Of a stretch of DNA of 64,000 bases, positions 49,820-54,656 are shown one piece after another. The notes beneath the pieces were generated by a model. That model made no database searches. It had not been told where the DNA came from and saw only the letters and a program-made list of their open reading frames with translations. Source of the stretch: Blastocystis sp. Blastoise (taxonomy: Eukaryota; Protista; Bigyra: Opalinata); the NCBI GenBank assembly GCA_039096225.1, contig JBBPEB010000015.1:248001-312000 (forward strand), written 5' to 3'. The translations under genes and the position numbers were made by a program. Positions within the stretch are counted from its first letter, which is position 1, and each line of letters starts with the position of its first letter.

Positions 49820-52800
49820 ATGCCAGAAGATACAACTGTAAATACTAATCCAGATACAACTAATGGAACAACTATTCCTAAGGAAACTCCCGTTAATGAG
49901 TATGTAGTAGTGTTTTTTCATTTTATCTATCATATTATTATTCTGTTAAACAACAAAATTAAAAACACGATAATCGTTGAATATATTTTTATTTATATTC
50001 TTGTAAAACTTTAAAATAATAATTTTTGTTTCTATTTAGAACTTCCAAGCCTGAAGTTGAACAAAAGCAAGTAGAAACAAAGAAACAAACTACTACTACA
50101 ACTATTGAAATGGTAGATATGAAGAAGTCTCATGTATATTTCTCTAACCTATAACAATTATGATTCTTTTATTTTAGAAAAATCATATATATATACTATA
50201 TTTTATTTTTGTAGACCTTACCTATTTTTCAAATTAACTATACGTTTGATCTTAAAATTGTTTCTGTTGATGAGAATGCTACAGTATGATATAATACATA
50301 ATATTCATTATAATTTCTAGAAACATTTCGGAGTTTCTAAGGATAATATGGTTAATCACAGTTTAACTGAATTCGTCCGTATGTTCAGAAATATGATTAT
50401 ATATATTGATATATATAGAAAAGGATTATTTAAAGAATCGTGATGAGAATGCTTTGAAGAACATTTTGACTAAGGAAGATATTCAAGATAGTGATATAAG
50501 TGTAGAAGAAGGAAAGAATAAGAAGAAAGAAATTATTACTTTTAATGGTAATAATAAGGAAGCCATGGATGTTAAGATTATTACTATTTCTATATCCTTT
50601 TTTTATTCTATATATACAGAATATCTAGTCTCTATTATATATTCTTATTTATTATTATCTTCATTATTTTTATCATTTATATATATATTGATACATTTCT
50701 TTAATACTATACTCTGTTAATGATAATGAAATTAAGGGTGTTTTTGAAGATGTAACTGAACTCATTGTATATATATATATATATATATATATATATATAT
50801 ATACTATTTCGATTATTGTCTATATACTATTATAATCTATATATATATATATATGTATTTACTATTTCGATTATTGTCTATATACTATGATAATTCCTAT
50901 ATATATATCTATATATAGAAGCGTAATCGTAGTGATACGGATACTTATATAAATAATATGAGTCGTAAGGGAAGTGGTGTATATGATACCTACAGTAGTG
51001 TCGGGGGATATGCATCCAATTATTATGCTAATCTACCTTGGTCTAATTCTAGAAGTATTTATTATATATTATATATTATATATTATATATATATAGCTGG
51101 TTCTATGAATGGTGAAGAAATGATTAATATGGATAATTATAGTACTACTACTTCTCAAAGTGGAGAATTAGTTGTAGAAATGAATGAACTCTATAAATCT
51201 CAAGTATATATTATATATTATATCATATATGTGTATATGTATACATAGAATGGTGAATGGATGAATACAGGTATATATAAGAATGGTTTCGAAGAATCTT
51301 CTACTAAAAATGGATATGGAGCTGTCTCACTTAATGGATTCGCCTATTTACGTCATTTCCTCGAAGAAGGAGTTGTTCTCTTAGATCAACCTGCTGATGA
51401 TATTAATGTATATATTTACATATATTATTATTATTATTATATTCATTATTCTTTTTATAGGATTGTATTCGTCATATTCTTGATGAATTTGAAGATAAGG
51501 TATCTATATATATATATATATATATATAATACTCTCTCTACATATATATCTATATTTATATATTAGGGTAAGATTGATATGTCGAATCGTACCTCTTTAG
51601 AAAATGTCTTATTAAATCAAAAGTCTCCTTTAGATAATGGAACAAATGCTATGTATAGATATAATATATATATATAATTATATAATTAGACTATATCTAT
51701 ATATAATATATAGTGCTAATGCTGATTCTAAGTTAGAGAGTTGTAAGGTGTTCATCACAACAGCTTCCTTCGTTCCTTCTACTTTAGCGGGTCTCATTCG
51801 TCTCTCTCATCCCCTTTATATCGATGGAGGTCTCCCTCTTCGTTATATCCTTGTTGTCATCGGTAAAGAAGACTCCTCTTACGAGTATATATATATAAGA
51901 TTTCTTCTATTCATATATATATATAGTTATCATGATATTGGTCGTGCTTTCTCTCTTATGATGGCTCAAAAATGGTTCTTTAATGCTGCTAAGAAGATTG
52001 AATCTAAACATAGATTCATTAAAGTATATATAGTCTATATAATAATAATAATAATAATAATAATAATAATAATAATAATAATAATAATAATAATAATAAT
52101 AATAATAATAATAATAATAATAATAATAATAATAATATTCTTGTTCTTCTTCTAGTTGATGGATACTTTCCTTCGTCGTTGCGTTATGCTCCCTCCAATG
52201 GATACCGCCACTAGAACAGCTGCTCCTGTAGAAACTGTCTCTTCCTCAGGCTGCTGCTCCAGACCTCAAACGGAAGGCGGACTCAGTATTACTCTTCCTC
52301 ATAGAGTAGCTGTATATATATATATATATATATATATATATATATATATATATATACTATATATTAATTAATTATATTATTCCTTGTAGAATCGTGCTAA
52401 TAACTATTTAAGTCGTCGTGAACATGTTATGAAGGAACAATCCGAAGATCTCTTAAGGTATATTTCTCTTCTATTTTTTTTTATTCTTTTTATTATATTT
52501 TTTATATTCTTTATATTATATTATTTATATTCTTTATATTTTTCCTATTATATATAGAGTTGCTCTTGAGGCTGAGCCTAGTGCTAAGGAGATTGATGAT
52601 CAATTACCTCCTGAGATTGAGAGTCATTTGGCTATTAAGGATATGATATGGGGTGGAGTCATCTTTATTCTTTGTGTTCTTGTGGCTGTCCTTCTTAATA
52701 CGTATAACTTCAGACCTTCCTCCGATGGTCTTCATGGAGTCGGTATGACGGATTATCCCATGGAAATGGTGGGAGGATTCAAATCGGTTGCTCCTTATGT

Positions 52801-54656
52801 AGCGAAGCAATTCAGTCTTCCTGAATCTCCTCGTGGCTTATATGAAATCAAGATTGCCTTAGAACGTTATACAGATGCTGTCTTTACTTATCAATTATTC
52901 GAAAAAGTCGGAAATGATCGTATGCAGATATTATTATTATTATTATTATTATTATTATTATTATTATTATTATTATTATTATTATTATTATTATTATTAT
53001 TATTATTATTATTATTATTATTATTATTATTATTATTATTACATATCTCCATCTATTTATAGCAGCTGTGAATATTACTAAAATGTTTATGGTTTCTACT
53101 TCTGATTCTAAAGAAGTTGAAGATTTAGAAGAAGTTGATGTTCGTTCTCTTCTTCATGATAATTCCATGCTTTATATAAATGTTATTCTTGAGACTGTAG
53201 AAGCTTCTACTACTCCTCTTGCCTTTACTCTTGATGCTATGCCTATGAATCCTGTTGGAGAATATAGAATTATTATTGGTATTATCATTCTTGTTCTTGT
53301 TTATGGTCTTCTCTTAGCAGAAGTTGTTCATCGTACAGTCTGTGCTTTCATTGGTGCTTTCTTTACTCTTCTTCTTATTGCTTTTGTTCAAGGAGCTCCA
53401 GAACTCTCCACGGCTGTTGCTTGGATTGATTCTTCTACTCTTTGTCTTCTCTTCGGTATGATGGTCATGGTCCAAATGTTATCCACTACAGGTCTCTTTG
53501 AATGGTGTGCTGTTAAAGCCGTACGTATCTCTGGGGGACGTCCTCTTGTTCTTAATGTCGTTCTTTGTGTTCTTACAGCTGTACTCTCTGCTTTCTTAGA
53601 TAATGTCACTACTATGCTTTTATTTGCTCCTGTTACTATTGAATTATGTAATGTTCTTAATGTAGATCCTATTCCCTTCTTAATTCCTGAAGTATTATTC
53701 AGTAATATTGGTGGTGCTGCTACTATGATTGGTGATCCCCCAAATATTATGATTGGTAACCTTTTAAGTGATTATGTTCAATTCATTGATTTCATTACTG
53801 ATGTTGCTCCTTGTTGTCTTATTGTTATGGTTTTCGCTTACTTATATTTATGGGGATTATATCACAAGAGTCTTCCTAACACTTCTAAACGTGTTGATGA
53901 TAATGTTGAAAAGAAATACAAAATTAAAAACATGCCTCTTCTTCTTAAGGTATGCTTGATTTATTATTATTATGTTTATTATTATTTGTTTCCTTCTACA
54001 ATCTATATTATTCATATATTTTTATATAGGCTGGTATAATATTATTAACTGTTATTATTCTTCTTTTCCTTCATTCTCTTCATGGTATTGATGCTGCTTA
54101 TTTGACTCTCGCTGGTGCTTTCAGTACTCTCCTTCTCGCTAAACCTGAAGAAATCAAACATACTTTTGAATTATTAGAATGGGAAACTCTTCTTTTCTTC
54201 GCTGGTCTTTTCGTTATGATTGAAGGAATGAATGAACTTGGTGTTATTAGAGCTATCGGTGAAGCTGTTGCTAATGGTATTCGTGCTGCTGAACCTTCCA
54301 ATCGTCTTACTGTTGCTATTCTTATTATTTTATGGGTATCTGGTATTGCTTCTTCTATTCTTGATAATATTCCTTTCACTGCTACTATGATTCCTATTGT
54401 TCAACTTCTTCATACTGATCCTGAACTTCAATTACCTATTAAGCCTCTTGCTTGGGCTTTAGCTTTAGGTGCTTGTTTAGGTGGTAACGGTACTCTTGTT
54501 GGTGCTAGTGCTAACTTAGTTACTGCTGGTATCGCTGAACATCACGGACATAAGATCAGTTTCTTAGCTTTCTTATTACCTGGTTTTATCACTCTTCTTA
54601 TTTCCTTAGTCATCTCTACTCTTTATTTACTCTGCAAATACGTTTGGTTCGCATAA
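49820..54656 (+). CDS. Chimeric transporter: PAS-like domain + SLC4/Band-3 cytoplasmic domain + OCA2/P-protein membrane domain
   Basis: One frame can be followed through GT-AG introns. Band-3 motifs ELVVEMNEL, GVVLLD, LIRL, PLRYILVVIG, YHDIGRAFSLMM, FL...VMLPP. P-protein motifs EVVHRT, WID..TL.LLFGMM, SAFLDNVTT, SNIGGAATMIGDPPN, DNIPFTATMIP, GACLGGNGTLVGASAN. Confidence 0.88.

Follow-up and report, generated by a model that had tools for sequence, protein, structure and literature searches.

A gene on the plus strand of Blastocystis sp. Blastoise contig JBBPEB010000015.1 (assembly GCA_039096225.1), at 49820–54656 of the 64,000-nucleotide stretch analyzed here (contig positions 248,001 to 312,000; hereafter the window), encodes a PAS domain, a cytoplasmic domain of the SLC4/Band 3 type (Band_3_cyto), a single transmembrane helix (TM1), a lumenal loop and an OCA2/P-protein-type permease, in this order and on one transcript, as had been proposed from the DNA letters alone (the original prediction). 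We interpret the product as a regulated OCA2-type permease with a PAS plus Band-3-type regulatory head and, by analogy with OCA2, a probable anion or pH role, a reading to which we assign a probability of about 72%. To our knowledge, the SLC4 cytoplasmic domain has been studied almost only within Band 3 and its bicarbonate-transporter relatives, and PAS domains are not known to us from any transporter of the ion transporter (IT) superfamily; literature searches turned up no case. The searches also returned no paper with both Pfam names, none on Blastocystis with OCA2 or P protein and none on Band 3 with this architecture, in agreement with the original statement that the arrangement was not known from characterized proteins, among which we found no such protein.

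The gene has 18 exons and runs from ATG 49820 to TAA 54654–54656 with consistent phases and no internal stop (phase bookkeeping), giving a corrected coding sequence of 3,423 nt (1,140 codons plus stop). Its public product, P0281 (KAK8803269.1; 1,134 amino acids (aa), 'hypothetical protein'), contains all exon peptides in order except that of exon 6. Exons were searched singly, and full-length evidence comes from the public proteins P0281, P0164 (the product of a paralogue in the same genome), P0128 and others. Domain assignments also drew on family profiles (A3 for the Band-3-type domain, A4 for PAS), on AlphaFold (AF2) models and on L001, an orthologue on a gut metagenome contig. The features of the gene are as follows.

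49793–54656, plus strand: whole transcribed gene as far as seen (RNA contig start at 49793, phase bookkeeping)
49820–49899, 50040–50133, 50215–50283, 50321–50378, 50419–50591 and 50713–50766, plus strand: exons 1–6 (phases, RNA)
50919–51054, 51097–51203, 51249–51407, 51461–51499, 51567–51652 and 51714–51884, plus strand: exons 7–12 (phases, RNA)
51927–52023, 52156–52311, 52390–52457 and 52558–52919, plus strand: exons 13–16 (phases, RNA)
53063–53949 and 54030–54656, plus strand: exons 17–18 (phases, P0281 annotation)
49820–50133, plus strand: Thr-rich low-complexity leader of ~58 aa, exons 1–2, unlike the leader of the paralogue
50215–50766, plus strand: predicted PAS domain of ~118 aa, exons 3–6, with an acidic/lysine-rich insertion (alignment with L001, profile A4)
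50592–50712, plus strand: intron 5, U12-type AT-AC (donor ATATCCTTT; TTCTTTAAT branch-site-like box ~10 nt before AC)
50919–51164, plus strand: Ser/Tyr/Asn-rich linker from the PAS to the Band-3-type domain, exon 7 and the start of exon 8 (sequence)
51165–52206, plus strand: predicted Band_3_cyto domain (SLC4-type, phosphotransferase system (PTS) EIIA-like fold), exons 8–14, P0281 residues ~239–452 (Pfam, profile, AF2)
52207–52639, plus strand: cytoplasmic linker of ~85 aa with a Cys-Cys motif and a charged stretch, helical by eye (sequence only)
52640–52696, plus strand: TM1, a single predicted helix, P0281 residues 538–556 (hydropathy scan, score 2.59)
52697–53268, plus strand: predicted lumenal/extracellular loop of ~140 aa, interrupted by intron 16; its one N-x-T sequon lies at residue 634 of P0281 (hydropathy)
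53269–54653, plus strand: predicted CitMHS/IT-superfamily permease core of OCA2/P-protein type (Pfam, homologues)

The gene is expressed as one transcript with one reading frame. Two data sets supplied the RNA contigs, which are Logan assemblies and were compared with window positions 49500–52928: X1 comes from a culture of the organism, and X2 is a poly-A metatranscriptome from gut, in which the strain is slightly different. One X1 contig (561 nt) starts at 49793 and runs through exons 1–5 into exon 6, and a second (2,810 nt), beginning 24 nt before the end of exon 6, contains exons 7–16 at the modelled boundaries with 0 mismatches. The latter extends 1,405 nt past 52919, its next letters being the start of exon 17 at 53063, so that the exon 16/17 join is seen only as the contig's continuation. 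The X2 strain has the same splice joints. Phase bookkeeping and spliced RNA thus confirm the single frame from ATG 49820 to TAA 54656 that had been claimed; the GT-AG introns of consistent phase claimed with it are borne out as to phase and, as to termini, for 16 of the 17 introns, the RNA joint of intron 5 being AT-AC.

That the single frame is an artefact, either of mis-assembly or of two adjacent genes (one for a permease, the other for a soluble PAS/Band-3 protein) read together, is scarcely credible. The Logan contigs are assemblies, and a contig over two genes would be no proof of one transcript; the intron 16 stretch at 52929–53041, an ATT repeat, also lies outside the RNA comparison. 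However, in the 2,810-nt contig all modelled junctions between exons 7 and 16 are spliced and the frame carries on into exon 17, while exon 16 itself encodes TM1 and terminates mid-codon. Moreover, full-length orthologues with both domains (1,093–1,389 aa) are present in Blastocystis ST4, BT1, Triparma and metagenomes, and the 3.3 kb of L001 include PAS, Band-3 and CitMHS, interrupted no more than twice.

Strain comparison adds a further line of evidence for the frame. The second strain (X2) shows 21 coding differences from the window, spread over the PAS, Band-3 and TM1/loop exons; 20 are synonymous and one is a conservative I-to-V change. Because 20 of 21 are synonymous, the reading frame is not a chance one, and the gene is, judging from these substitutions, under strong purifying selection.

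By sequence and predicted fold, the domain encoded by exons 8–14 is homologous to the N-terminal domains of SLC4 transporters, which are regulatory domains (e.g. in AE2 and NBCe1). PF07565 matched P0281 with 95.2 bits against a cut-off of 34.3, reaching profile positions up to 292 of 294, and the exon 12–13 piece alone with 34.0 bits (E = 3.2e-8), in support of the Band-3 motifs first noticed at 51160–52200. Against the PDB, profile A3 retrieved NBCe1 (4.7e-38), NDCBE (2.6e-37), Band 3 (1HYN, 1e-32) and then AE2 and AE3, reaching every solved SLC4 N-terminal domain; PtsN came next, at only 0.01. A 103-aa Band-3 piece searched against protein representatives gave six fragments, leading to L001, and a look-up in the ESM Atlas returned only animal Band_3_cyto clusters, with scores under 0.9.

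The AF2 model of the paralogue's domain (P0164:205–450; mean predicted local distance difference test (pLDDT) 70.8) matched AE2 (3.3e-16), the NDCBE regulatory domain (TM score 0.73) and 1HYN (2.4e-14), and the depositors' title of entry 5jho names the SLC4 N-terminal domain a regulatory domain. Among the structure matches are cytoplasmic domains of AE1 solved in complex with ankyrin and protein 4.2. EIIA-Ntr matched the same model in Foldseek at 2e-5, with a TM score of 0.45 and 13% identity. Likeness to the SLC4 N-terminal domains (AE1/Band 3, AE2, AE3, NBCe1, and NDCBE) therefore comprises clear sequence homology, a predicted fold at a TM score of ~0.7 and the signature blocks of the C-terminal half of the domain, which are also kept here. 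PtsN (PTS EIIA-Ntr) and EIIA-2 share the basic fold and the Pfam clan and rank right after the SLC4 matches, but are much less similar; because the match is specific to Band_3_cyto, the domain does not represent a fresh bacterial EIIA fusion.

What separates the protein from SLC4 transporters is the membrane domain. In SLC4, the cytoplasmic domain sits on an HCO3_cotransp domain, whereas here it sits on an IT-superfamily permease, with a PAS domain ahead of it. HCO3_cotransp (PF00955) gave no match on P0281, and the protein is therefore not an SLC4 member; the genome has one sub-threshold match, at another locus. Within its own genome, Band_3_cyto was found only at this gene and its paralogue. 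A homodimer prediction for two copies of residues 217–535 scored 0.16 against a mark of 0.32, which counts neither way on dimerization.

The membrane part is, by profile and homologue matches, an OCA2/P-protein-type permease of the IT superfamily (ArsB/NhaD/CitMHS/SLC13). CitMHS matched exon 17 at 4e-51, exon 18 at 3e-32 and P0281 with 287.6 bits (1.6e-85), and the core carries the conserved hairpin motifs SNIGG..GDPPN and GGNGT..GASAN. Over 446 aa, the permease shares 43% identity, and both motifs, with a choanoflagellate protein named 'pink-eyed dilution-like 1'. Matches to the C-terminal half of the ST4 orthologue, at E values of ~1e-105 to 1e-108, include proteins that carry the names 'tyrosine transporter', 'P protein' and 'pink-eyed dilution-like 1'. 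In the hydropathy scan, the next helix after TM1 begins at residue ~700 of P0281, and an insect P protein can be aligned to the last ~55 residues of the intervening loop with 28% identity (E = 3e-5). Hydropathy, CitMHS and the P-protein homologues thus agree with the single transmembrane helix, lumenal loop and P-protein/OCA2 domain of the original prediction, just as profile searches recovered both Band_3_cyto and CitMHS on P0281 (95.2 and 287.6 bits) and AF2 models searched with Foldseek recovered the SLC4 N-terminal fold (on the paralogue) and the PAS fold (on L001).

In PMC10372470, OCA2 is described as a cytoplasmic N-terminus, TM1, a ~130-residue lumenal beta-sandwich and an inverted-repeat core, TM1 and the lumenal loop being unique to it among solved IT-superfamily members. 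There, it is a chloride-conductance and pH regulator of melanosomes, and its fold is of the elevator type and probably dimeric. As judged from sequence, the position of the loop in our protein matches that of the OCA2 beta-sandwich described there. In OCA2, the sandwich has eight strands and is GOLD-like. Likeness to OCA2/P protein further includes the CitMHS core, both hairpin Asn motifs, the extra TM1 and the ~140-residue length of the loop, with ~38% identity to an insect P protein. The N-terminus sets the two apart: OCA2 has a disordered cytoplasmic segment of ~170 residues with dileucine sorting motifs, whereas here ~535 residues hold folded PAS and Band_3_cyto domains, which the topology puts in the cytoplasm. 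With the Band-3 profile, hhalign detected no Band-3-like domain in the long N-termini of choanoflagellate, Epithemia (diatom), and Capsaspora OCA2-like proteins.

A different substrate would change the role of the whole assembly: the permease could be a metalloid or silicic acid exporter (ArsB/Lsi2-like) or a Na+-carboxylate importer (SLC13-like), with N-terminal domains that tune detoxification or nutrient uptake. The ArsB and Na_sulph_symp Pfam models do match it, database names in the family include 'arsenical pump membrane protein', bacterial ArsB/NhaD proteins are ~44% identical to exon 17 (in a search whose length window excluded full-length relatives), and modelling in PMC10372470 proposes Na+/dicarboxylate symport for OCA2 itself. 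We nevertheless regard such an exporter or importer as rather unlikely, given that the ArsB and Na_sulph_symp models reach ~50 bits compared to 287 for CitMHS, that the OCA2-specific extra transmembrane helix and lumenal loop are present, and that the best named eukaryotic relatives are P-protein/pink-eyed-dilution-like.

Profile and model evidence identify the region encoded by exons 3–6 as a predicted PAS domain. The family profile A4 gave 48 matches in the PDB, all of them PAS proteins (BMAL1 best at 1e-7, FixL at 7e-4). Pfam matches were sub-threshold throughout: PAS_9 reached E values of 3.9e-5 in L001 and 6e-4 and 1.6e-4 in two uncultured relatives, PAS_11 scored 18.9 against 25 bits in P0281 (E = 0.0015), whose annotation is without the true last strands and which also has a weak PAS match, and the PAS exons searched singly against Pfam had no match. 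The AF2 model of the L001 PAS region (pLDDT 76.5) has the element order two strands, helical segment, three strands, and matched the PAS domains of FixL, DosP, ARNT, and HIF-2a with a probability of 1.0 and a target-normalized TM score of ~0.7.

Window exons 3–5 are collinear with the PAS_9 region of L001, and exon 6 (18 aa), misplaced by MAFFT, fits by eye the last strand of L001 and its D-x-T-E turn. The PAS domain originally claimed is therefore upheld by profile A4 and the L001 model, though the Pfam scores stay below threshold. It resembles the PAS sensor domains of FixL, DosP, and ARNT/HIF/BMAL1 in the fold order of the model and in its PAS-only PDB matches, and differs from them by a charged insertion of ~20 residues and by having no conserved heme-ligand His or LOV Cys. 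A FixL-type heme PAS was considered, FixL topping the fold search, and rejected for want of a conserved His in the equivalent helix of the family alignment.

A second copy of the gene lies ~200 kb away on the minus strand (G000:C4, about 505.9–510.6 kb) and encodes P0164. Starting with the final 24 nt of exon 6 and continuing to the stop codon, the exon DNA of the two copies is 98–100% identical and 955 of 964 residues agree (99%), compared to 44% identity across the PAS region and unrelated leaders. The existence of two copies with near-identical bodies and different PAS heads suggests that the PAS head sets input specificity. The near-identity begins abruptly at 50743, 24 nt before the end of exon 6, a boundary that suggests either gene conversion of the body or recombination giving one body different heads.

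The pair of copies also bears on an alternative in which the Band-3-type domain is mainly a scaffold to cytoskeleton, adaptors or enzymes, as in erythrocyte AE1, and the PAS domain a ligand-free interaction or dimerization module. Such a head would fit the presence of AE1 cytoplasmic domains with ankyrin and protein 4.2 among the closest solved structures, as well as the weak PAS scores and a PAS alignment with no conserved cofactor-binding residue. However, both in sequence and in fold the domain is matched best by regulatory N-terminal domains, those of NBCe1, NDCBE, and AE2, and not by that of AE1, and paralogues that differ essentially only in the PAS head are easier to explain by different inputs; we consider a mainly scaffolding head improbable.

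Near-identity of the copies has a consequence for the RNA: the X1 contig downstream of exon 6 matches the window at 6/6 discriminating sites in exons 9–16, but, because the paralogue bodies are so alike, contig sequence 3' of exon 6 is not assignable to one copy with full certainty. At 53064, just 3' of the intron 16 acceptor, the window has A where the RNA contigs of both runs and the paralogue have T, a synonymous difference; the contig may switch copies there, or the window copy may use the site differently.

The architecture extends beyond this isolate. Band_3_cyto and CitMHS occur together in Blastocystis ST4 (XP_014529952.1, named 'arsenical pump membrane protein') and BT1, in the free-living marine stramenopile Triparma columacea, and in several uncultured eukaryotes, two of which also have PAS matches. 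Metagenome relatives of 845–1,093 aa cluster at 90% identity with a Blastocystis hominis (ST7) protein, L001 (a 3.3-kb contig) has the three domains in the same order, and a scan of metagenome contigs (alignment A5) found 15 loci, at least two of them labelled human gut in the contig names. These matches indicate that the fusion is a conserved family, so far of Blastocystis, Triparma and a few uncultured eukaryotes, and public protein databases already list its members, under names that say little about them.

The original prediction had read the architecture as a module swapped between two transporter superfamilies. A Band-3-type domain on an unrelated permease is what we find; a one-off swap is not, the family being conserved, and the direction of any transfer goes beyond the evidence. 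Band_3_cyto is conserved on an unrelated transporter fold and is therefore a module that can be transferred, and not a part that co-evolved within the SLC4 machinery.

By analogy with OCA2, the regulated permease would move or conduct a small anion (chloride-like, possibly proton-linked) as an elevator-type carrier or channel, probably dimeric, and would thereby control pH or ion content, either in a compartment or in the cytosol, like OCA2 in melanosomes. The Band-3-type domain would autoregulate it from the cytoplasmic face, as in AE2, NBCe1, and NDCBE, and the PAS domain would supply the input signal. From these likenesses we infer a possibly signal-gated anion or pH transporter, as originally proposed.

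Several points weigh against this reading. The family is known so far from sequence, RNA and predicted structures, and the substrate of OCA2 is itself debated between chloride conductance and Na+/dicarboxylate symport (PMC10372470). The PAS domain falls short of the Pfam gathering score, the best being PAS_9 at 24.3 against 27 bits in the orthologue L001; the PAS structure model is that of L001, ~40% identical, and not of the window protein; and the family alignment has no invariant His or Cys to suggest a heme or flavin cofactor. Likewise, the Band-3 model (mean pLDDT 70.8) is that of the 99%-identical paralogue. As for the transcript, the RNA contigs are assemblies, and beyond the exon 16/17 joint they have one letter of the paralogue in place of the window's, so that we infer transcription of the window copy's last two exons.

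A broader and more tentative scenario, which we would not favor at present, starts from the Band-3-type domain as an old portable regulator of anion transporters, not an SLC4 invention, that stramenopiles placed on an OCA2-type permease. In Blastocystis, the PAS head would then use this domain to gate an anion pathway that sets pH or ion content, on a gut signal (oxygen/redox or a metabolite), and the paralogues would be two tunings of one valve; the compartment might, speculatively, be the central vacuole.

The gene offers a natural experiment on how a Band-3-type domain controls a membrane domain. For OCA2-type transporters, whose substrate and regulation are disputed, it provides a relative whose built-in regulatory and sensor head is open to deletion or exchange. 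In Blastocystis, the commonest eukaryote of the human gut, the gene is a candidate for an ion or pH transporter under signal control, with conservation in isolates from tortoise and human alike.

There is also a practical point: as publicly annotated, both copies have an incorrect PAS C-terminus, where intron 5 is located. The RNA joint 50591→50713, with ends AT..AC, is present in both X1 and X2, and the AT-AC termini, the ATATCCTT donor, the branch-site box near the 3' end and the use of the intron in RNA mark it as U12-type. The paralogue has the same AT-AC intron (L015, about 6357–6455, minus strand), with donor ATATCCT and a TTCTTTAAT box ~10 nt before AC. The annotation behind P0281 continues for 12 residues inside the AT-AC intron and leaves out exon 6, and that of P0164 is also wrong at this intron; because the AT-AC intron was missed, both public models lose the last PAS strands.

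In the genome, a U6atac gene exceeds its threshold (G000:C21:544821-544937, L017; 63.8 bits), and a U12 snRNA candidate of full length (G000:C24:844725-844868, L016; 46.8 bits) falls below the threshold of 53. On the basis of these two matches, the tortoise Blastocystis appears to keep a minor spliceosome, and other non-GT-AG introns of this genome may also be minor-spliceosome introns. The genome paper (PMC12129017) reports three tortoise isolates with genomes of 26–33.3 Mb, 21–23% GC and long introns; the word 'transporter' is absent from it.

Intron content differs between the copies more than their exons would suggest. The introns they share are identical except for microsatellite length, yet there are ten presence/absence differences: window introns 7, 8, 11, 12, 14, and 17 are absent from the paralogue, and four introns inside the equivalents of exons 17 and 18 are found only in the paralogue (window 50743–54656 vs L015, G000:C4:503501–513000). 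This pattern looks like very recent, precise intron loss or gain.

Within 49820–54656, exons have 36% GC and introns 5–17%, in a window of about 25% GC. The introns of the gene are rich in (TA)n and (AAT)n runs, and long pure (AAT)n/(ATT)n and (TA)n microsatellites, whose lengths differ between the paralogues, fill introns at 52040–52135, 52929–53041, and 52316–52355. The next open reading frame downstream (54955–55527, plus strand, 190 aa) begins ~300 nt past the stop codon and encodes hydrophobic segments.

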